DNA of 64,000 nucleotides. It comes from Cyanophora paradoxa CCMP329. Lineage: Eukaryota > Plantae > Glaucophyta. The notes beneath the pieces were generated by a model. That model searched no databases, had not been told where the DNA came from, and was given only the letters and a program-made list of their open reading frames with translations. Location: assembly GCA_004431415.1 (NCBI GenBank), contig QPMI01000043.1, positions 62,001 to 126,000 on the forward strand. Reading direction: 5' to 3'. The position numbers and the translations under genes are program-made. Shown here one piece after another: positions 461-57,293 of the stretch (within the stretch, counting starts at the first letter, position 1; the number at the start of each line of letters is the position of its first letter).

Positions 461-2364
461 ATGCACCAGCATCGAGCGCTGGTGCTCGCCGCGGGTGCGG
501 CGGCGGCCGCGGTCTGGGCGTGGTGGCGGTCGAGAATTTCATCGCTGGAAGCGAGCACAGGCGCGCCAGTGATCCGGGTCGGCTGGCCGATCATCGGGAC
601 GGCAAGAGGTGCGCATGCGCCGCCGAGTCGGCGCGGCGCCGCCCGGACCACCTGTCCCCCGCCGACGGCTGCTGCGCAGCGTTCCGGAAGGATCCTCTCA
701 AGCTCCTGCGCGAGGCTCGCGAAGCTTACCCCGACGCCGGCGGCGTGAGCCTCGACCTGCGTCAGCGCGGCCCCCTCCGACTCCGCCTGGCCCGCGGCTG
801 ACGCTTCCGTGCGCAGTGGCGATGCAGCTGACGGTCGTGTGGGGCGAGGAGGAGGTCGTCGCGTACCACAAGAGCCCGCGGCCCGTGCTGTCGACGCGGC
901 CCTTCATCGACCGCAACTGGGAGCCAGTCTTCGGGCCGCGCTCGGAGGCGGCGCGGGCGCACCAGTACGGGGCCAGCGGGCACGAGTCGGAGGACTTCAA
1001 GTACATCTCGCGGGCCGTCTCGCGGCCGCAGCTGGAGGCGTTCCTCCCTGTCGAGCTCCGCGTCGCCGCCGAGGAGGTGGCGCGCTGGGCGGCGGCGCCC
1101 TGCTTCGAGGCGTACGAGGCGGCCTCGCGGCTCGTCATGCGCGCCAACGTCCTCTTTTTCCTTGGGCCCGCCTTCGAGCCGCACGTCGACCGCATCGCCG
1201 AGACCTTCCTCCGCCTCGAGCAGACGGCGCGCCCGCCCGGGAGGAGGGCGCCCCAGCCCGCCGCTGACGCCCGGGGCCCCGCAGGCTGTGTCGCCTCAGA
1301 TGTGGGTGGGCGGCCTTGCGCGGCGGCGGGCCGCGCGGCTGCAGCGGCGCCTGGCGACGATCTTCACGGGCGTCTGGCGCTCCGCCGGCATCCGCCCCGC
1401 CCAGGAGGGGGTGCCCGCCGCCCCCGCCCCCCGCCGCCCCGCCCGCATTGACGCGCGAGCGCAGCTGGGGGGCTTCCTGGCCCACTTCCCCGACTTCTAC
1501 GAGGAGAAGGACTTCGTGCACATCCTTATCGGTCCGCACGAGCCGGCCCGTGCCGGCGGCGCCGCTCGCCGGGGCGCGGCCGGCGCCGCTCGAGGCGGGG
1601 GCGGGCAGGGATGCTCTTCGGGGCGCACACGACGACGGCGGGGACGCTCTCCTGGCTCCTCGCCTCCCTCGCCCAGCACCCCGAGCGCGCCGCGCGCCTC
1701 GCCGCCGAGCAGGCCGCCATCGTCGCCGCCCGCGGGCCCGCCCTCGACCTCGCCGCCCTCGACGAGGCGCCGCTCCTGGGCCGCCACTTCAAGGAGGTCG
1801 TCCGCCTGCACACCGTGCCCCTCACCGTCCGCGTCGCCGCCCAGCCCTGCACCGTCCCGCCCCGCGCCCCTCCGCCCCGCGCGCAGGCCCTGCCGGGCTG
1901 ACGGCCTCGCAGCTGGGGCGGTACCGGATCCCGGCGGGGCGGCACGTCGCGTCGAGCCCGCTGATCTCCAACTCGGACCCGGCGACCTTCGAGGACCCGC
2001 TGGCCTTCGCCCCGGAGCGCTGGGAGCGGCCCGACGCGACGCCGGCCGGCCTGGAGCGGTACCGGCAGAACCTCTTCGGGCACGGCTTCCACCAGTGTCT
2101 CGGGGAGAAGTACGCTACTTACCTGATCAAGGTCCGTGGCCGCTGCAGCTGGCGCCGTGCACGGGCGCCGGGTTGCCGCGCCCCTGCAAGCGCGCTCCTC
2201 TGACTCCCTCGCAGCTGGTGGCGGCTTACGTGCTCCGGCGGTACGACGTGCGCTTTGCGGAGGGGGCCGGCCCCGTGCCCCCGCCCCAGGCAGACGTCCT
2301 CCTCGGCTCCCAGTACGCCTCCGGGCCCATCCGCCTCGCCCTCGTGCCCAGGAGCTATAGCTGA
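461..2364 (+). CDS. Cytochrome P450 (CYP51-like I-helix), ~8 exons, N-terminal membrane anchor
   Basis: Spliced product has anchor [24 protein letters not shown]-helix GMLFGAHTTTAGT, ExxR (KEVVR), PERW and heme motif FGHGFHQCLGEKYA. Introns include 609-679 (GT-AG) and ~1227-1284 (GC-AG). Confidence 0.9.
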
Positions 2365-2692
2365 GAAAATTGAAGTCGTCCTGAATTCGAAAAGCTTGCC
2401 CGCGGCTGTGCACGTGCACGTGATCATGAGCGTTAGCCCGGAATTTGATCGGACGTCGATGGGGGATCGGTTTCGACCGGGGTACACCCTATAACAAGGC
2501 AGTTGTAGCGGAGAAAGCACGCGGCTGCGGCTGGCGGTGCGGGGGCAGGCATGGCCTCCAACCGTATCTTCTTCGGCTACAGAGCCGCTGTGCCGGTTCT
2601 GGTGTCGGCGGGCGACTCTGACACCGTCCTTCTTGCCAACTCCAACACCGCCTCAGCGGGTCCGCCCCCCGCGCCCCCGCAGTCTTAGCTTC

Positions 2693-5600
2693 ATGAACTA
2701 TGAGATTAAGTTGCTGCTGGAGTTTACCGGCGGCGGCATCGCGGCGGACCGATCGCCAGTTACCGACCGCGCCCCATAACTCGCAGACCTCGCGCTCTTC
2801 GCGGCGGCCATTGCCGATGACGAGTGCCATGACAACATCCAACTCGTTTCCTTCAATCCTGGTGCGCTCCTGGCACGGGAGAACCACCCTTGCCAAGTCA
2901 ACGGCCTTGGCGTGCCGCCCCGTGTCACCCCTAACGCCAAAGTACCAGGGGATGCAGAGCAGCTCTCCAGTTACCTCGCATACAATGGCGGCGATGGCGC
3001 CCTGGTTCTGGCCGATACCACGGAATCCCAGTCAAACCAGCGCCAGACGGTGTTCACGAGCGCATATGTGCGGCCAACCGCTTTCCTGTGGTCTTTAGAG
3101 TCCCTTCCATGCGCCCGCGTGACCACCCGCGCCGCAGAACGCGTGTCGGGTCCGCCGCCCGCGGCATCATGAGAAGGGCATCCGCGCTGTGTGGGTGACG
3201 CGCTTCGATTACCGCACGAAGGAGGATGTTCAGCGCATTATCCAGAACTGTGCCGATGCGGGCTTCAACACGGTCCACTTCCAGGCGCGCTTGATGGAGA
3301 TATCACGCGTTCTCTCCCATGAAACCTTTGACGCGATCGCAGGTTCGCGGCGATGGCACGGCGTGGTACCGTAGCTCAGTGGAGCCGTGGGCGGAGCAGC
3401 TGGGGCCCAACCCAAGCTTCGACCCGCTGCAGGAGGCCATCCGGTCCGCTCTCGAACCGCGCAGCTCTCGCCGGCGGCCGCTAACTCGAGCGCTTTTTCT
3501 TTTGCACAGCGCTGCGCACGATCGCGGCATGGAGCTCCACGCGTGGGTCAACGTTATGCCCGGCTGGCGCGGTCCGCACCCGCTCCCGCCAAATGGCGTT
3601 TCTTCTCCCGGCCGCCCACGGGCGCGCCCGCAGGCACTTCTCCGCCCCGCGACCCGGAGCAGTTGTACAATAAGCACCCGGAATGGTTCTGGTGCGGCCC
3701 GCGCGGTCGGGATTGCGCTCGCTCTTGCTTGACCGCGTCTGCGCCTGCAGGTACGACCAGAATGGGAAGCGCCAGCCGCTCACAAAGAACTTCTACGTCA
3801 GCGTGAACCCGTGCCTGCCTGAGGTGCGGCCGCTGCTGCGGGTGAGGGCGCCGGGGGGAGGCCGACACGGCGCGCAGGTCCGGCAGTACCTCGTGAACGT
3901 GTGCCGCGAGATTGTCCAGCAGTACGAGGTCGATGGTCTGCACATGGATTACGTCCGCTTCCCGAACGAGGAGAGCGTCCCTTGGGGTGCGACGCGCCGC
4001 GTGGCGCAGGTCTCGTCGAGCCCCGCTCACGCCGCTGGTCGGCAGGCTCGAAGACCGACTACCCGCGGGACGCGCGGACGGTGAACCTGTTCCGGAAGGA
4101 GACGGGGAAGACTCCGGAGGCGGACACGGAGGCGTGGACCAAGTGGCGGTCAGACTGCATCACTTCGCTCGTGCGGGACGTGCGCCGCATGGTCGACGAG
4201 GAGAAGCCCAAGGTCGTCCTCTCATGCGCCGTCTGCGCCGAGCCGGACTACAGCCGCAAGCGCTTCTTCCAGGCGCGCCCGCCCGCCTCGGGGCTGCCGA
4301 CCCGCCGCTCACGGCGCGCCGCAGGACGCACAGCGTTGGCGCGAGGAGTGCCTCGTAGACCACGTGTACCCCATGAACTACACGCAGAGCCTCGAAACCT
4401 TCAACAAGCGGACCTCCACCTGGTGCCCGGCGGACAAGAAGGGTACGCGGCGTCTCGCACCCGCCCCGCCCGCCTCGCTGCCGACGCGGCGGACGGCGCA
4501 GGCTGCACGGGGGTCGTGATGGGCGTGGACATGGGGATCGGCGGCTGGGAGGTGAACAAGCAGCAGGTCGCCTCGGCGACGGATAAGTGCGGCGGCTTCG
4601 CGGCCTTTGCCTACGCGAACCTCTTCGACTCCCACCACCTCGAGTGCGCCGCCAAGGACGGCCACCAGCGCACAAGGTGCGGCCTCCCCGCGCCCGTCCG
4701 CCGCCCCGCGGTGCAGGCCCCCGCCGACGCGCGGGGCGCGATCGAGCAGGAAGGAGCAGAAGCGGCAGGGCCTGGCAGCGTTCATGGCAGGCCTCGGGGG
4801 CGTCATCGACAGCGTGCTGCACGGCGGGCGGGCGCGGCCAGAGGAGACGACGGGCCCCGGGGGCGTCGCCCGGCACGTCTCGGCGGCGGAGGGCGACTCG
4901 GAGTCGCCGGAGCGCGGGCCGCACCGGTACGCGGACGAGCCGCTGGGCGGCCCCGTGGCGGCGGACGGCTGCCCCGCCGGCGGCATCATGGTCGTGCCGG
5001 AGGCCGCCGAGGAGCGCCGCTTCGGCGTCGCCGGCCTCGACGGCTCGGGGCCCCAGGCCGTCACCGTCTCCCGCATCCTCCAGCCCCGCATCAGCCTGCA
5101 GGGGCCGCCCGCGGGCGCCCTCGGCAGGCACCCCTTCGTGGTGGGGCGCCCGACGGGCCCCGCGGAGCTGGCGCCGGCGACGTTCGTCACGCACACGCTG
5201 CAGCCCGGGGAGACGCTGATGGCGCTGACGCGCAAGTACGGGTGCTCGCTGGACGCCATCCGCGCCGCCAACGAGTCGACGCTGCGGGACCTCCACCTCG
5301 TCCCCGTCGGCCAGCGCATCCGCGTCCCCGTCGGCGCCGTCTCCAAGGCCTCCGCCGCCAACGCCGTCGCCTCCTCCGTCGCCGCCGCCGCCGCCGCCGC
5401 CGCCGCCTCCTCCGCGCCGCGCGCTGCGCCGGCCCCGGCCCGGGCCCCGTCGCCGCCGCCGGCGGAGCAGTCGGTGGTGGTGCAGAAGGGGGACACGCTC
5501 TTCGGGATCGCGCGGCGGCTGAACGTGGCGATCGACGAGCTGCTGGCGGCCAACGGCATGGACATGGACTCGGCCTCGCTCATCGCCCCGGGCCAGCGCA

Positions 5601-41827: not shown

Positions 41828-43637
41828 ATGTCGGCGGTCCTGCTCTTGTTCCGGCAGACGCTGGACGCGGTCCGACAATGGCACGAAGGTGCCGGTGCAA
41901 CGCACGTGCGCACGCGCCCCCCGTCCGACGCCCCGCACGCAGCGGTGCCGACGGACTGCCCGGCGGCGCTGCTGCGCCCCTCCCTGGAGCGAGCGGTCTC
42001 GCACATGCGCGCGTACGTGGCGGAGCTGCGGGAAGGCCTCGCCGGCTCCTCGCGGGAGGCCAGCGCAGCGGGCGCGGTAGCGGAGGAGGTCATCGATTTC
42101 AGCTGGGAGCGGCTGCACATCGGGCCGTGGAATGAGGTGGACGTCTCGTGGCGGGAGACGTATGCACTTGGCACGCTCGTCCGCGTCCTCGCGACCTTCC
42201 TCCCCGTGGCGACGGCTCTCGACGGGGCGTCGGGCGGCGGCGCCGGCGCGAAGGCGGCGTGCGTGGAGGCGATGCGGCTTGTAGATATGGGCCTCATGAT
42301 GGGCGGTCCGCGCCACCACGCCCCCCTCGAGGAGGCCGCGCGCGTCATCCAGGCACGCGCGCCCCGCCGGCGCCGCCGGCGCCTGCCCGCCGCGCGTCGC
42401 CTGAGGCCGGCGCAGGACTGGTGGGGCAAGCGCGATGGGGCGCAAGAGGAGGAGGCGGGGGCGCACGGGGCGACGGCGCCAGCGGGGCGGCTGCTGGTGC
42501 CCGGGGACGCATCGGAGGCGCCGGAGATCGCGCCGGAGCGGGCGGTGCCGCGGATGGAGGCGCCCCACATGGACGCCTTCCGCACCGGCGTCCTCGCCGC
42601 GCAGGCCCGCCCCCCGATCCCCTCCTTCGCGCGCGTCCGAGCGGGGCGCAGCGGCCGGCGGTGCTGACGGGGGCGATGGAGCACTGGCCGGCGCTGACGA
42701 CGCGGCCCTGGGCGGACCTCGCGTACCTCAAGCGCCGCGCCGGCCTCCGCACCGTCCCCGTCGAGCTCGGCTCCCACTACCTCGCCGACGGGTCCGCCCC
42801 ACCCGCCGCCCCGCCCGCCCGCCCGCCCGGCTGACTTCAGGCGGCGCGGGGCAGGTGGGGCCAGAAGCTGATGACGCTGAGCGAGTTCATCGACCGGCAC
42901 GTGCTGGCGCCCGAGCCCGGCGGCCCCGTCGGCTACCTCGCCCAGCATCAGCTCTTCGAACAGGCCCGCCCCGCCCCGCCCCGCCCGCCCCGCCCCGCCC
43001 CGCTTCGGCCTCACCCCGGGCGGCAGATCCCGGAGCTGCGGGGGGACATCGCGGTGCCCGAGTACTGCTACCTGCCGCCCCCCGGGGCCGACCGCTGCGC
43101 CCACGACCTCTTCGTCAACGCCTGGCGCGCCTTCCGCCCTCCGCCCCCAGCTCCGCGCCGGCCGGGCCCCGTGACGGCGCCAGCAGGTTCGGGCCCAAGG
43201 GGACCGTCAGCCCCTGCCACACGGACCCCTACGACAACCTCCTCGCCCAGGCCCGCGGCCCCCTCGCCCCATCTCGCGCCCATTGAGCCCGCGGCCGGAG
43301 CAGGTCGTCGGCCGCAAGTACCTGCGCCTCTACCCCCCCGAGGAGGGCCCGCGGCTGTACCCGCACGAGCCGCCCTCGCTGCTGACGAACACGAGCCAGG
43401 CGCGAGCGGCGCCCCTGCCCCTCGTTAGAAGCGCGGCTGGCGCCGACGCGCGCGCGCATGGGCGGGGCGCAGGCGGACGTGGAGCGGGCAGACCTGGCGC
43501 GGTTCCCGCTGCTGGCGGGGGCGCGCTGCGTGGAGTGCGTGCTCGGCCCCGGCGAGATGCTCTTCATCCCCCGCGGCTGGTGGCACTACGTCCGCTCCCT
43601 CGACCCCTCCTTCTCCGTCTCCTTCTGGTGGCGCTAG
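41828..43637 (+). CDS. JMJD5: JmjC-domain protein, JMJD5/KDM8 (cupin-like) family
   Basis: [126 protein letters not shown]. Confidence 0.92.
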
Positions 43638-46398: not shown

Positions 46399-48217
46399 TC
46401 ACGCCGCATGCGCGCCCATAGAAGCGGTCGTCTTTGACTCATTCGGATTCCACTGAATCTGCACAAGCGGCGAATCCGATTTCAAAAGAAGCTTAAGAAT
46501 GTATACGTATATATACATGTGCGCAAGCGCATGCAGAACCACGCACCGGCCGTGGCGCAGACGTCGACGACTGCATCTTCTTGGTGCCCATGCTGTTGGA
46601 CATTGCCGCATCGAGAGTGATGAACTCGCTCTTCACGCCGCGGTCGCCCCTGCCGAGCGCACGATCGACGCGCTGGAGGATGACGTTGAACGAGGCGTCA
46701 AGGTGCCCCTGCGCATGCATCGTTCTGGTCAGAGCGAATAGCTCGACTATTACTAGCAATAAATACTCAAATTGCCGCACGAATTCTCGGATCCACGCCG
46801 TGGAAAGAGTCGTGAAGACATCCTTGACCGTTGTGAGGACGCTGCTTTGCTCCTCGCCCATCGCATCGAACTTGACGTCGGGGCCGAGATTGTCGACCAC
46901 GAAGTCCTTGAACGTGCGCTGGTCGTGCACGAGGACGAAATTCTTCCCCGCCTTCTTCGCCGTGACGATCTCTTTGAGAACCCACGTGCTGTTCAGCACG
47001 CCTGTGCGCACGACAATCATGATCAACACATAATTCGAAGTCAATGTGCATGCAATTGCAATATTGGCCATTGGCTCACCAGGCGTCAGGAGCAGCAAAA
47101 TGCAATTGGTGTGCTGCACCACGGCGGGGAGGTTGTGCACGTCCTCGCCGTCGCGCACGTCTGCGCAAATAGCAATTGCAAGTCAACTGCAGCTGCAGCA
47201 CGGGCTCGAGTTCGCGATCGAGAGACTCCGGGAGCTGGCCATGGCGTGCGCGTGCGGCCCAGTATACCCATTTGCATGCGCGCGCACCAAGGAAGATCTT
47301 GAGGTCAGGGCGCGCCCCTTTGATCTGCGGTTGCGGAGTCCCGTCACGTCTGAACCATATGCAATAATATGCAAATGCATCGTGCCATGGTGTGAAGACT
47401 CTATATATAGCTAGATCTAGATCTAGATATCGATATCGATCTGGCATTGACATCTCCGCGGCCCGCGCGCACCGTCATGTAGAGGAGCTGGGCGAGGTCG
47501 CCTCCGGTCGACTGGACGTGGCTGATGAAGATGTCGAACCCCTCGGCGCTGGCGCCCTTCGAATTCCGACTCTCTGTAACTCGCTCCACAGTCTCCACCA
47601 TCTCGCGCTGGTACTTGGCGACGCTCTGCTCCGTAAGAACATTTTGCAGCTCCGGAGGTGCCGCCTCCTTGAGCCGCTTCAGCTGCGCCCGAACGGCCGC
47701 GTACATCTTTCCCTGATAGATGTAACTTCCTGAGCGGTCGTACGCGTGACGCCTAGTTCAGAGCGACATGCGTACGCATCCACATCAAACGTTGACCGAT
47801 GAAAATGCGCACCGATGCCGCAGGTCAAATAGCTCACTGCGACGAAAGCACAGCAGTTCCCGCACGGGGTTTTGCGGGCCTTCATTGCCCACGGAGTGCT
47901 GTCGAATCAGCGAGTCAGCCGATGATGCTGATGCGAAAAGTCGCAAGCTGCATGCGCACGGACCCATAAGCCGGGAGGTTTTTGTCGTAGTACCAGAAGA
48001 GATCGCAGCAGACGGCATATCCCACGGGGCAGGGCCTGCAGCAGCACAGATATCCCTTCTTGGCCTGCATGTAGGCCGACTGGTGGCAGCAGCCACCCAG
48101 AGAACTCCCTTCCTTGATCGTGCACACCGGGCCGCATAAGCCAGGGCACGCCTTGTCGATGAAGCAGCATCCAAAGAAAGGGGACGGGCCACAGCAGGGA
48201 TCGTCTTCCGGCTTCAT
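46399..48217 (-). CDS. Cys-rich N-terminal domain + SARM1-like TIR domain protein, copy A (8 exons)
   Basis: MKPEDDPCCGPSPFFGCC...; TIR motifs FDIFISHVQSTGGDLAQLLY, KIFLDV, NCILLLLTPG, STWVLKEIVTAKKAGKNFVLVH. ORF is intact after splicing. Confidence 0.85.
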
Positions 48218-48361
48218 TGGTGATGTGTGCGTGAAAGTGATTCCGGAGCGAGCGTATGGCGCGTATACGTAGTGCTAAAGGCTGAAAATCGAGCGCGCCC
48301 GGCGGCCGCGCACGGTACCGGGCTACTACCGGCTCGGTGAATTGATACTATGCTATCGATA

Positions 48362-48620
48362 TACTGTAAAACTAGAAATGTCCGGCAGAACTTAATATTC
48401 GGCGCTTTTCGGCATAGCCTCACGGCGCCGAATATTTGCATCTGCCAGAATTGTGCAGATGTATGGCAGGAGAGAAGTCAATGTACCCGCCGCCTCGGCG
48501 GACTAGTACTGGCTGTGCCGCCGAAAATATGATGCGCATGAACCACAATTTCGGCGCAATTTCCGGGTTTTGCCGAAATAAAGTGACGCCGGATATTTCT
48601 CGTTTTACACTGTGACAGTA
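48362..48620. mobile_element. MITE-like element with imperfect terminal inverted repeats, flanked by TA
   Basis: Left end tactgtaaaactagaaatgtccggc; right end gccggatatttctcgttttacactgtgacagta. No coding capacity; termini shared with the element at 50642. Confidence 0.55.
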
Positions 48621-49084
48621 TATCGAGATCGCCGCGGCCGATGTCTGCGCTCGCGATCGGAGCTCGAGCTCGAGGAGTCGCTGCCGCTCGCCGGGCCGGG
48701 CGATCGCGACTCGGCCGCGGGCGCCGGGGGGGCCGGGGGGGCCCGGGGTCCGGGGATCCGGATTAATATTCCGGACCCGGGACTCCCGGGTCCGGGAGTC
48801 CCGGGACTCGAGTACTACTACTGTACTAGTCGACCGCCGGCCCGGGGCCGGATCCGGAACTTCCGGAAGCCCCCGACGGCCGTACGCGTGACGTCGATCG
48901 ACGGAGAGTCGGCGACCGTCGGACCCCCGGGCCGTGACGGACGCCGTCACCGTGACGGACGCCGTCACGACGCTGTGACGGACCTCCCGGGTCCGTCACC
49001 GTGGCACAGCGTCCGTCATGCACGGTTAAATTGCCTCTGGAGTACGTTAATTTGCCGAATTCGCCCCAAATTGCAAACCAGAAT

Positions 49085-49565
49085 TGCCATGGCGATAAAT
49101 TGCCGAATCCAGAGTACTAATCCTGCTGAGGACCTGCTCTATGGCGGGCTAAGCAAACACCTAGTACATTACCTACCCCCCACGCAATTCCCGTGATGCT
49201 AAATTGCCGAATTCGGCCTTTCGGCAAATCACGGCGATTATTTATATAATTAGTATAGATACTGCCTACAGTAGTATACTACGTACTCTGTTTAATGTGG
49301 ACGGCTTTCAAGTTTAATGTTTTAGCAGTAGGTCCGTCGTAGGACAGCTTTAATGTTTTAGCCGAGTGTTTTAAGTTGCCGCCGGCGTAATTATAAATTG
49401 CCATGCATGATCGAGGCCGAATTCGGCAATTTTAAGCACTGGCAGTATTACTACTGGGGGTAGGGATTCATATATAGGCTGCTACATAGAGCTCGAGTGA
49501 ACGTTAACGTCGACGTCTATAGCTAGCTAGCTAGCTCGATCTGATTCGGCAATTTATCGCCACGA
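49085..49565. repeat. ~480-bp imperfect fold-back (nested inverted repeat) element
   Basis: ggcgataaattgccgaatc (~49091) pairs with gattcggcaatttatcgcc (~49543); aaattgccgaattcggcct (~49201) pairs with aggccgaattcggcaattt (~49414); cctaccccc (~49172) pairs with gggggtagg (~49456). Confidence 0.7.
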
Positions 49566-49765
49566 TTTTCAGGTTGTTGAAATGAAATTAATTAAAAATA
49601 TAAGCGCGGCGCACAGTCCGGACCGTCCGGCCCGCGGCGCGGCGCGCGGCGGCGGGGGATCATGACTCAGTGATCAATTATCATCGGATCATCATTTCGA
49701 TTCGGATCACGGAATCGGATGGCACGCACGGCGGACGGCGTCACGTCCTTCCCGGCGCCAAATCA

Positions 49766-49965
49766 CTTCGACAGCATCTTTATTTCGTCTATATTCGTCA
49801 GACCTGCGCTTTAAAAATTTGACGAATATTTGATACTCTGAACTGAAATTGTGTACGGGAAAGGGTACGAACGGCTGACCCGTCTATGGCGAATTCGCGG
49901 GGCTGACGAAAATATAATGCTAGCTGTCGAACCATATTTTCGTCACGATTTTCGGGTTTTGTCGG
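49766..49965 (+). mobile_element. Truncated direct-repeat copy of the interior of the MITE at 50642-50918
   Basis: cttcgacagc.tctttatttcgtc...gggtac.a.cggctgacccgtctatg...gacgaaaatat.atgct...aaccatattttcgtcacg is shared with 50660-50873. Confidence 0.7.
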
Positions 49966-50641
49966 CTACCGGTACATGTACATGAGCGGCGAATCGCCGC
50001 CGGCGATCGCGATGATGAGCCTACCACACTGGCCAATACATCGACATCATGGCATGATCATGCGATCATCGGATGATGATTCATACTTATATGACTCATA
50101 ATATGAGTCATGAGCCCCATCATCAGGCCCCCATGCCATGATGTCATGATGATGATTCACAATCTCAGACTCTCAGATCGAGTCACAAACTTTTTGAAAC
50201 TCCGAGGCTCAGCGGCTCACTGAATCGTGCGGATTTGTGCCCCTTCATGCCATGGTGATCCTGAGTCCGCCGTCACTGACGCGACGTCACGGCGTCACAT
50301 AGTTCCGCAGTATCACTAGCTATAGCTAGAAGCCTAGAACCGGTAGTATCATAGCATAGCAGGGCTAAGCAGGCTAGCTAGTGCGTTTCAACTTGGCAAG
50401 TAAACTGCCAGGCTGTGACTCCTGTGACTCAGTGAGCCTGTGAGTCTGTGACACTCTGGCACTCACTGACTCAGTGAGTCAGAGTCAGTGCGTGACAGTA
50501 CTAGTACTGTATCGCGAATCGCGATCGCCGACTCGACGCCGAGTCGATCCCTGCCGTACCGGTAATAGGTCCGGTATACGTAGTATACGTACCGTCACGG
50601 CGTACGGTAGTACTATCATACTGATGATAGTACTACTACTA

Positions 50642-50918
50642 TACTGTAAACGTAGGAATCTTCGACAGCGTCTTTATTTCGTCTATATATTCGAGTTCGT
50701 CAGACCCGATCGCGAGCTTTGAGCCTTTGACGAATATTTGATATTCTTGAACAGAATTTTTGTATGAAGAAGGGTACAAGCGGCTGACCCGTCTATGACG
50801 AAGTCGCGGGGTTGACGAAAATATGATGCTGGCGAACCATATTTTCGTCACGTACGACTTTCAGGTTTTGTCGAAATTAAGTCTCGACGAGCTTTCCTAC
50901 GTTTACACTGTGACAGTA
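50642..50918. mobile_element. MITE-like element with TIRs (tactgtaaacgtagga...tcctacgtttacactgtgacagta), flanked by TA
   Basis: Clear terminal inverted repeat; same end motifs as 48362-48620; partial second copy at 49766. Confidence 0.6.
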
Positions 50919-51147
50919 GTAGTATCCCGTTATGCCATGATGATTTCCCTAGTAATCCCTACTACTACTAGGCTACCAGGCTACCGTATACGTACGCGTA
51001 GTACCACGGTAGGCCTGCAGGCTGCATGCGCGCAGCTGCGCATATACTACTACGTGACGCATAGAGCTACTAGCTGTACCATAGTACTACGGTACGGTGC
51101 ATAGGCTAGCTGTCGACAGAAACACCTATCGCTATCATCTGCTTGCG

Positions 51148-52959
51148 ATGAAGGACGAGGACGATTTCTGCTGCGGTCCCTCCCCATGCTGCGGCTGCTG
51201 CTTCATCGACAAGCCGTGCACTGGCGCCTGCGGCCCGTTTTGCACGATCAAGCACGGCCAATACTGCAACCCTCTCTCGGTTCTCTGCTGCAACTTCTCG
51301 TACTTTCTGTGCGCCAAGGAGGGCATCTGCGTCTGCTGCAGGCCCTGCCCTGCGTCAAGCGCGCTCTGCTGTCATCTCTGCTGGTACTACGACAAGAACT
51401 TTCCCGCTTACGGGCAAGTCTTTCATGTCTTTCTGTCAGTGTCGCAATGTCGACGTCCGACTGACGCGTACGGCGCGCGGCTGGCAGCACGAAATGGGCA
51501 ATGAAGGCCCGGAAGACGCCGATCGGAAACATCCTTGCCTTGGCGTTCATCAACTACCTCACATGTGGCTGCGGTGTGCGAGCGGCGCTTGTGCACGTGC
51601 TTGCGCGGCCGGGCTCTGACATCGAGATCGATGCCTTTAATTTGTCATCGCAGGACAGTACGTGTACCAGGCACGCATGTACGCGGCGGTGAAGCACCAG
51701 TTGAAGCGGCTCAAGGACGCTGCACCGCCCGAGCTGCAGGCCATGCTGACGGAGCAGAACGTCGCCAAGTACCAGCGCGAGATGATTGAGACTGTGGAGC
51801 GCGCTGTCGAGAATACCAAGGGCAACAGCGCTGACGAGGGGTTCGACATCTTCATCAGCCACGTCCAGTCGACCGGAGGCGACCTCGCCCAGCTCCTGTA
51901 CATGACGGTGCGCGCGGGCCGCGGAGATGTCAATGCCAGATCGATATCGATATCTAGATCTAGATCTAGCTATATATAGAGTCTTCACACCATGGCACGA
52001 TGCATTTGCATATTATTGCATATGGTTCAGACGTGACGGGACTCCGCAATCGCAGATCAAGGGGGCGCGCCCTGACCTCAAGATCTTCCTTGGTGCGCGT
52101 GCATGCAAATGGGTATACTGGGCCGCACGCGCACGCCAGCTCCCGGAGTATCTCGATCGCGAACTCGAGCCCGTGCTGCAGCTGCAGTTGACTTGCAATT
52201 GCTATTTGCGCAGACGTGCGCGACGGCGAGGACGTGCACAACCTCCCCGCCGTGGTGCAGCGCACCAATTGCATTTTGCTGATCCTGACGCCTGGTGAGC
52301 CAATGGCCGATATTGCAATTGCATGCACATTGATTTCGAATTATGTGTTGATTGTCGTGTGCACAGGCGTGCTGAACAGCACGTGGGTTCTCAAAGAGAT
52401 CGTCACGGCGAAGAAGGCGGGGAAGAATTTCGTCCTCGTGCACGACCAGCGCACGTTCAAGGACTTCGTGGTCGACAATCTCGGCCCCGACGTCAAGTTC
52501 GATGCGATGGGCGAGGAGCAAAGCAGCGTCCTCACAACGGTCAAGGATGTCTTCACGACTCTTTCCACGGCGTGGATCCGAGAATTCGTGCGGCAATTTG
52601 AGTATTTATTGCTAGTAATAGTCGAGCTATTCGCTCTGACCAGAACGATGCATGCGCAGGGGCACCTTGACGCCTCGTTCAACGTCATCCTCCAGCGCGT
52701 CGATCGTGCGCTCGGCAGGGGCGACCGCGGCATGAAGAGCGAGTTCATCACTCTCGATGCGGCAATGTCCAACAGCATGGGCAGCAAGAAGATGCAGTCG
52801 TCGACGTCTGCGCCACAGCCGGTGCGTGGTTCTGCATGCGCCTGCGCACACGTATACATTCTTAAGCTTCTTTTGAAATCGGATTCGCCGCATGTGCAGA
52901 TTCAGTGGAATCCGAATGAGTCAAAGACGACCGCTTCTATGGGCGCGCATGCGGCGTGA
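51148..52959 (+). CDS. Cys-rich N-terminal domain + SARM1-like TIR domain protein, copy B (8 exons)
   Basis: MKDEDDFCCGPSPCCGCC... (~20 Cys in the first ~80 aa), hydrophobic ILALAFINYLTCGCG, helical linker, then TIR FDIFISH...STWVLKEIVTAKKAGKNFVLVH; ends MGAHAA*. Confidence 0.87.
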
Positions 52960-53726
52960 TCATGAGAACATCCGATGATCATGATCACGATCACCTTAAA
53001 GCTTGGATATAATCACGATGGATCTACAGCTGGATTCGGAAGGCGTACCGTAACTTTCCAGGCCCAAGGCGCTGCCCTCGACTTTGATTTCGCATTTGTA
53101 GCTAAATATCATAGTATATAGCTCTATAGCAATCTAGATCTGCAGCTGTACATGCTTTAGGCGCCGGCCGCCGGGCTTGTGATTCCATTTCATATCAAAA
53201 TATTGCCGCGCGCGGCCGTCAACGTTGCGATTTATGTAAATATATCGGTACCACGGTGTACTAGTACATAAAAGAAGCAGCTGTCGCGATCGCGCCTGGC
53301 AGAGGTTTTTTTTTTGGGGGGGGGGGGGGGACACGTGGCCATGAATATGGTCTCAAGCGTGCAATATTAATTGCGCATGCCGTAATGCGACCAGCTGCAG
53401 CCGCAGCCGCACTGCGGCGCATGCATATGGCAGTTTGTTTCAAGTTTTTGACCGCATGGCGGCACAACCGAGGGCCGGGTCTGGTACCGTACTAGTGCAT
53501 GCCCAATATTAATTATCCTAAAAAAGTAGATACCGATTGAGATCTAGAGGCTAACCTGATCATGATCATGATTCATATGCATGAGCCGGAACGCACTGTG
53601 GCAGCACTCAACTCGTCTGGCCCTAGTAGCGCTTCTTGCAAGAAATATTGGCACCGAAATTGTGATATCGATGTCCGTGAGCCGGACCCAGAATCTCTCA
53701 GTGCGGACCTACAGCTGCAGCTACAG

Positions 53727-57293
<3,567 letters not shown>

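Follow-up and report, generated by a model that had tools for sequence, protein, structure and literature searches.

The locus described here lies within a stretch of 64,000 nucleotides (hereafter the window, whose numbering is used throughout) of contig QPMI01000043.1 of the glaucophyte alga Cyanophora paradoxa CCMP329 (assembly GCA_004431415.1, positions 62,001 to 126,000, forward strand). Two gene models, here called A and B, form a divergent pair, ATG to ATG, inside a low-GC island (45.8-53.6 kb, 54% GC compared with about 75% for the window). Each would encode a protein of about 385-388 amino acids (aa) in five parts, namely a Cys-rich head, a hydrophobic segment, a helical linker (about 55 residues), a predicted TIR domain and a C-terminal tail (about 55 residues) of disordered appearance. 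The reading preferred here, to which we give a probability of about 0.62, is that these are two intact paralogous nuclear genes which join an orphan Cys-rich head to a SARM1-type TIR domain and have a history of partial gene conversion. Coordinates of the features are collected in Table 1.

For the gene models, both copies were read in three frames and their splice phases were compared. Eight exons result for A and B alike, with identical splice phases, the lengths of both coding sequences (CDS) are multiples of three, and in either copy all eight exons are open and all splice sites intact; the introns measure 65-148 nt and have a common GTGCG...CAG look. A BLASTN search of the island against the window returned a single inverted match between A and B (85% identity overall), which spans both genes precisely from the ATG (48217/51148) to the very end of the stop codon (46399/52959). 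The original prediction, which described two 8-exon genes diverging across a low-GC spacer of about 2.9 kb, thus stands on both counts: the model fits both copies with phases kept, and the spacer has 52% GC compared with about 75% for the genome. Part of the model is also present in public annotation. An open reading frame (ORF) at 52216-52956, which happens to read through two introns, led to two EukProt proteins, of which tig00000169_g11910.t1 (P0001, 295 aa) corresponds to gene B from a Met in exon 2 (ATG 51501) and g11909.t1 (P0002, 264 aa) to exons 3-8 only of gene A, starting at a Met within exon 3. These proteins bear out the splice sites of exons 3-8 in both genes and of exon 2 in B, with a donor after ..LLYMT.

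The resemblance between the two genes is very uneven along their length. Their outer arms, which hold the TIR domain, the C-terminal tail and introns 3-7, are about 98.7% identical, introns included, and align as four collinear blocks that are 96-99% complementary; in windows of 50 nt, 48-50 positions match within the arms compared with 21-41 further inward. A base-by-base comparison agrees with the near-identical halves that had been described from the start of the TIR domain to the stop codon, in that the tract differs by 15 substitutions and by three intronic insertions specific to A (6+6+10 = 22 bp). Divergence of this part is about 1.3-1.6% and is alike in exons and introns, with intron 3 matching at 147 of 148 positions. 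Introns 1 and 2, by comparison, match at 41/74 and 47/83 positions, no better than shuffled sequence (means 39.9 and 46.3), so that the introns upstream of the boundary are indeed unrelated, as had been claimed. For exons 1-3 up to the boundary, the pooled synonymous divergence (dS) is 0.91, the non-synonymous divergence (dN) 0.28 and their ratio (omega) 0.30. Exons 1-3 are therefore old paralogues that have been under long-term purifying selection in both copies, while the tail, in the simplest reading, was homogenised by gene conversion or an equivalent recent replacement, because selection cannot keep introns identical. The proposal that conversion keeps this half uniform is in this respect upheld.

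The contrast between heads and tails stems entirely from the young tail, and not from fast-evolving heads, because the heads are under purifying selection and are no more diverged than the linker (head exon: dN 0.30, dS 0.93, omega 0.33; linker: dN 0.21-0.34, dS 0.66-2.0). The idea of a variable sensor, for which a comparison of dN/dS per domain had been suggested, is contradicted by these values, which indicate purifying and not diversifying selection.

As a sequence of events, an old inverted duplication (dS about 0.9) would have given rise to A and B. In a later conversion between the arms, perhaps repeated, the sequence of one gene would have overwritten the outer 1.1 kb (TIR domain and tail with five introns) of the other. 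The tract begins two codons ahead of the first strand (betaA) of the TIR domain. On the outer side it stops with the final base of the stop codon, beyond which homology is no longer recognisable, and on the inner side it adjoins a 3-bp indel and a poorly conserved, indel-rich stretch of the linker; both are natural limits of a homology-dependent tract, and selection for a 'TIR cassette' need not be invoked. Within the tract, positions 52361-52731 (from exon 6 through intron 6 into exon 7) contain no differences at all (P = 0.014 for 18 events spread evenly), which hints at a second, later conversion tract.

Several small features accompany this tract. A palindromic microsatellite (GATCGATATCGATATCTAGATCTAGATCTAG) occurs in intron 3 of both genes, inside the converted part (47406-47453 in A, 51927-51974 in B), and may plausibly be a hotspot for exchange between the arms. 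A short-read joint 47428>51942 was considered as evidence of inversion but was set aside as a probable alignment artefact, with 21 nt on one side and a position in a palindrome. Each of the three insertions specific to A, located at 47240-47245, 47020-47025 and 46509-46518 (introns 4, 5 and 7), makes or lengthens a local palindrome (GCCATGGC, ATCATGAT and ATGTATA..TATACAT beside GTATACAT).

To assign the homogenised part of the protein, profile searches were run on single exons and on the annotated proteins P0001 and P0002. The exon-by-exon Pfam search gave no TIR match, because the domain is spread over five exons. Weak profile matches were obtained in four libraries and all are of TIR type, including Pfam TIR (PF01582; E 0.013, 15.8 bits with a cut-off of 21.3, hence sub-threshold) and ThsB_TIR, ThsB and SAVED-TIR of PADLOC, and ThcB4 of NCBIfam. 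Among sequences of solved structures, the top 17 matches in the PDB are SARM1 TIR chains (E 4e-5 to 1e-3), followed by MAL/TIRAP (E 7e-3). The HMMER alignment to solved TIR domains covers residues 86-175, from betaA to betaD, and pairs FDIFISH with DVFISY of SARM1 in betaA, IFLDV with VFIDV in betaB and LILTPG with LVLSPG in betaC; alphaA is aligned too, and in the alphaC helix WVLKEIVTAKKAGKNFV pairs with WVHKEIVTALSCGKNIV of SARM1. Glu159 (P0001 numbering), within WVLKEIVTA, corresponds to residue 642 of human SARM1 when positions are counted along the 724-aa chain 7knq_A, and is present in both copies. In a passage of PMC6040629 that cites Essuman 2017, this Glu is given as required for the NADase activity of SARM1, and E642A is the usual dead control for that enzyme (PMC11025887). 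ESM-Atlas features place the domain at 0.96 to eukaryotic (haptophyte) TIR_2 clusters, with 198/256 features shared. Together, these data support the view that the tail half contains a TIR domain that is divergent but of SARM1 type, with the Glu at the catalytic position kept, as had been supposed. No ARM, SAM, NB-ARC or LRR domain was detected by Pfam in the exons or in P0001/P0002 (up to E 10 for ARM and SAM), in keeping with the description of a module devoid of all four. Nor is any other sensor domain, such as FN3 or a propeller, recognisable in the pair. Relatives are scarce: a word-index search of 5.8 billion proteins returned only the two copies themselves in the range of 92-516 aa, and no relative of the TIR part turned up in metagenome or viral contigs.

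The Cys-rich head is encoded by exon 1, which is clearly coding, as judged from its omega, its GC content at third codon positions (GC3 0.83, compared with a total GC of 0.59), the homology that starts at the ATG and the retention in B of 14/15 cysteines of the A head. CC doublets are numerous in both heads and CCC occurs as well. A likeness to PLAC8 or CYSTM modules had been suggested, and many vicinal Cys beside a hydrophobic segment are indeed shared with these and with cysteine-string modules; this is a composition typical of S-acylated anchors. The family assignment itself fails, since neither head matches any Pfam family even at E 10 when exon 1 is searched. Likewise, a phmmer search of 1.84 billion representative proteins was without a match, as were PADLOC and NCBIfam at permissive thresholds, and ESM Atlas features reached only unnamed clusters (0.82-0.87), which is under the usable level. 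The hydrophobic stretch that follows in exon 2 is about 20 residues long and borderline in strength (Kyte-Doolittle mean 1.6 over 15 residues); membrane anchoring is no more than plausible.

A number of observations weigh against the preferred reading and have to be set beside the evidence above. At the level of the gene models, exon 1 is missing from the public annotation of either gene and exon 2 from that of A, and intron 1 of B requires a GC donor (GCAAGT...CAG). No transcripts were seen: the contigs (not the reads) of two runs guessed to be RNA, compared without a control gene, gave only chance matches of 20-40 nt. The exons of the tail differ at seven sites, five of them non-synonymous and two synonymous, which fits relaxed constraint, although seven are too few to tell relaxed from ordinary constraint. 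As regards the TIR domain, no family profile reaches its curated threshold, and of the two matches that had been expected the one to SARM1 was obtained (E 4e-5) whereas that to Pfam TIR_2 (PF13676) remained sub-threshold (E 1.2e-3, 19.8 bits with a cut-off of 28). The RR that follows betaA in SARM1 (FISYRR) is replaced by VQ (HVQ), and a SARM1-specific loop before the Trp of the W..E helix is missing, leaving this part about 8 residues shorter; because of the replaced Arg pair and the missing loop, catalysis would not be assured. AlphaFold2 models are of low confidence, both for the whole protein on a 2-sequence alignment (predicted local distance difference test, pLDDT, 38.6) and for the TIR part as a single sequence (pLDDT 53.7, with strands and helices alternating as expected for a flavodoxin-like fold, in the order bA-aA-bB-aB-bC-aC-bD-aD-aE), because no alignment of relatives could be built. 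The top Foldseek matches of the latter model are mostly TIR domains (SPARTA, SARM1, MAL, RUN1), but they are weak (E 5e-4 to 1e-2, template modelling score 0.40-0.47). Finally, the charges of KARK lie on the N side of the hydrophobic segment and disfavour a receptor with the head outside and the TIR domain inside. Since an N-terminal hydrophobic signal is also absent, a cytosolic S-acylated or hairpin anchor would be favoured over an outward-facing sensor, by inference only.

Near-identical arms of 1.1 kb in a long-read assembly could in principle reflect a repeat that was collapsed or wrongly duplicated, and mis-assembly had been named as an outcome that would undo the original prediction. 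For this reason the contigs of four public runs were compared with positions 47400-53000 (5,601 letters); two of them, short-read runs of 2012 whose kind is unrecorded, were taken as DNA because introns and spacer are covered alike. The 2012 contigs reproduce both heads with 0 mismatches, and the corresponding unitigs (47516-48296 and 50861-51864) break 30 nt into each arm. In the tail they carry both A-type variants (the 6-, 6- and 10-bp insertions included) and B-type variants, each at about half depth (for example, 31.8 of 59.7 at 52262-52360), and the depth of about 40 in the heads compared with 57-95 in the tail fits two copies. The inverted repeat is a true two-copy repeat, and an artefact of assembly is extremely improbable. 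A less extreme doubt concerns the link between the Cys-rich exon and the rest, as this exon might belong to a small gene of its own, or be an ORF that is untranslated or was mis-called, with the TIR proteins starting at the Met of MKARK. Such an arrangement would agree with the annotated proteins and would dispense with the non-canonical donor of B, the junction of exons 1 and 2 finds no RNA evidence in the contigs of the two presumed RNA runs, and the ORFs of exon 1 continue past the donor to stops 16 codons (A) or 31 codons (B) downstream. These read-on tails, however, are unconserved between A and B, whereas homology breaks off at the same codon (..PAYG) with a phase-2 donor in both genes (GT in A, GCAAGT in B) and is taken up again right at the exon 2 acceptor (AG), which precedes the Met by four codons. 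In addition, the CDS of both 8-exon models are divisible by three in length, and no separate gene is annotated between g11909 and g11910. The splice from exon 1 to exon 2, and with it the fusion of the Cys-rich head to the TIR domain, is thus considered quite probable on sequence comparison, and a separate exon rather unlikely. The donor of intron 1 of B (51414-51487) is GCAAGT (GC-AG) and that of its A counterpart GTCCGT (GT-AG); this change between paralogues may be the cause of the gene predictor missing exon 1.

Granted that both genes are real, it can be asked whether they are still in use and whether they act together. The locus might be a decaying or silent duplicate in which the near-identity of the tails records one recent conversion or partial re-duplication that is functionally meaningless, and the want of transcript contigs in the two presumed RNA runs, the excess of non-synonymous over synonymous changes in the tail (with exons about as diverged as introns) and the position among high-copy repeats all point that way. 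Against this stand the open exons and intact splice sites in both copies, the long-term purifying selection on the older parts (omega 0.30 over a dS of 0.9) and a GC3 of 0.84 that matches the host, so that silence is judged somewhat less likely still than a separate exon. At the other extreme, A and B might form a functional sensor/helper pair, associating as hetero-oligomers through identical TIR domains while the diverged heads sense different cues, and conversion might have been favoured since it keeps the TIR interfaces compatible. The divergent orientation, the differences between the heads (31/84 aligned residues, with 20 Cys in B and 15 in A) and the start of the tract so close to betaA would suit such a pair. 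Yet there is no diversifying selection on the heads, the tract ends are accounted for by the end of homology and the indel-rich linker, no shared promoter element was found in mirror orientation, and the identical architecture and catalytic residue leave no division of labour; such a pair is accordingly regarded as improbable. For the paired immune NADase system that had been proposed, two proteins of the same architecture with the same catalytic residue, separated by a spacer made of repeats, offer no basis, and nothing supports an immune-pair role. The locus is not a demonstrated immune system; what it adds is an orphan-headed, very small TIR architecture with a mosaic history.

If the preferred reading of two intact, partly converted TIR genes is followed to their products, these are predicted to be self-associating TIR effectors that cleave NAD+ and would be held at the membrane through palmitoylation of the Cys-rich head and/or through the hydrophobic segment. 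This NADase activity is inferred, as would be any part played in immunity or in cell death. A bolder and frankly speculative extension, to which little probability is attached, is that the Cys-string head responds to lipid, redox state or metal and, as a switch, gathers the TIR domain of SARM1 type into clusters at the membrane, which would make the protein a minimal, self-contained NAD+-depleting death or alarm module without an NLR (nucleotide-binding leucine-rich repeat), SAM or ARM scaffold, with mixed A/B oligomers and recurrent conversion retained for the sake of identical TIR interfaces. No published work on TIR genes in glaucophytes was found in a literature search.

Comparison with known systems helps to place the pair. 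The SARM1 TIR domain (PDB 6o0q, 7knq) is the best solved relative of the tail by sequence (E 4e-5). SARM1 also has ARM and SAM domains, whereas the proteins of the pair lack both, and hence would have neither the octamer scaffold nor the autoinhibition that senses NMN (nicotinamide mononucleotide) and NAD; with an N-terminus formed by the orphan head and hydrophobic segment, unlike that of SARM1, they are not SARM1 orthologues. The plant NLR pairs RPS4/RRS1 and RGA4/RGA5 are similar in that two divergent TIR-bearing genes are involved, but in C. paradoxa there is no NB-ARC/LRR, integrated decoy or sensor/helper asymmetry, and a repeat spacer of 2.9 kb is found in place of a compact shared promoter. 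With respect to genome structure, human Y-chromosome palindromes likewise have inverted arms that are about 99% identical, non-coding sequence included, beside diverged sequence. Unlike these, the present arms measure no more than 1.1 kb, and just the 3' 60% of the older, longer duplication has been converted, so that either gene is a mosaic with one half old and the other young. Near-identity that extends to introns, with abrupt tract ends inside older homology, is the pattern of concerted evolution by conversion.

Should the proteins be made and active, they would represent a very small TIR NADase design (orphan Cys-rich head, hydrophobic segment and TIR domain) in a glaucophyte. Glaucophytes stand close to the base of the Archaeplastida. 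Such a finding, if true, would add to the picture of enzymatic TIR domains of SARM1 type that have been widely re-wired in protists. The locus is furthermore a clean natural case of an inverted pair that has been converted over part of its length. With an old half (dS 0.9) and a young half (1.3%) in a single gene, it lends itself to dating and to work on the limits of conversion tracts.

Table 1. Features of the divergent gene pair and its surroundings (positions in the window).
Feature	Positions	Strand	Remarks
Gene A, 385 aa, 8-exon model	46399..48217	minus	CDS 1158 nt; all introns GT-AG
Gene A, exons 1-4	48217-47964, 47898-47813, 47729-47473, 47324-47288	minus
Gene A, exons 5-8	47160-47080, 47001-46781, 46708-46547, 46458-46399	minus	stop 46401-46399
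Gene A, exon 1, Cys-rich head	47964..48217	minus	15 Cys in 84 aa
Gene A, homogenised arm	46399..47545	minus	predicted TIR domain and C-terminal tail, introns 3-7
Gene B, 388 aa, 8-exon model	51148..52959	plus	CDS 1167 nt; intron 1 GC-AG, others GT-AG
Gene B, exons 1-4	51148-51413, 51488-51573, 51654-51907, 52056-52092	plus
Gene B, exons 5-8	52214-52294, 52367-52587, 52660-52821, 52900-52959	plus	stop 52957-52959
Gene B, exon 1, Cys-rich head	51148..51413	plus	20 Cys in 88 aa; no relative in any library
Gene B, exon 2, KARK then moderately hydrophobic segment (IGNILALAFINYLTC)	51488..51573	plus	A counterpart 47898-47813
Gene B, codon of Glu159 (P0001 numbering)	52396..52398	plus	A counterpart 46972-46970
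Gene B, homogenised arm	51835..52959	plus	15 substitutions and 3 indels relative to the A arm
Spacer between start codons, 2,930 bp	48218..51147		52% GC; at least four high-copy repeat patches
Spacer repeat patches (approximate)	48335-48708, 49083-49269, 49644-50017, 50579-50952
Flanking JmjC/cupin_8 exon	43386-43634	plus	E 6e-17
Flanking ArsA/Get3-like ATPase fragment	53797-54288	minus	E 5e-5

Neither of the two flanking genes (Table 1) is immune-related. A foreign or viral origin of the low-GC island was considered and rejected, as the GC3 of the pair (0.84) is close to that of a neighbouring host gene (0.83), and the low GC can be traced to introns, spacer and codon positions 1 and 2. The island was also discarded as a candidate transposon, since its edges show neither terminal inverted repeats nor duplications and its spacer has no Pfam or Rfam match.

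The repeats of the spacer have a read depth of 900-3,100, compared with about 40 for unique sequence, and are thus present in high copy genome-wide. Two of the repeat patches are direct repeats located about 230-400 bp upstream of each ATG, and the spacer holds no shared element in mirror orientation; because these patches are direct and not mirrored, they are independent insertions outside the duplication. Neither Pfam nor Rfam gave a protein or RNA family in the spacer, a patch of 71% GC at 48620-49000 included, which contains nested short palindromes (CCGGGTCCGGGAGTCCCGGGACTCGAG; repeated GTGACGGACGCCGTCAC). A palindromic motif, TTGCCGAATTCGGCAA, is seen in many of the spacer repeats. In addition, 49766-49964 and 50660-50873 are direct repeats that are 78% identical, absent elsewhere in the window, and have the look of a miniature inverted-repeat transposable element.

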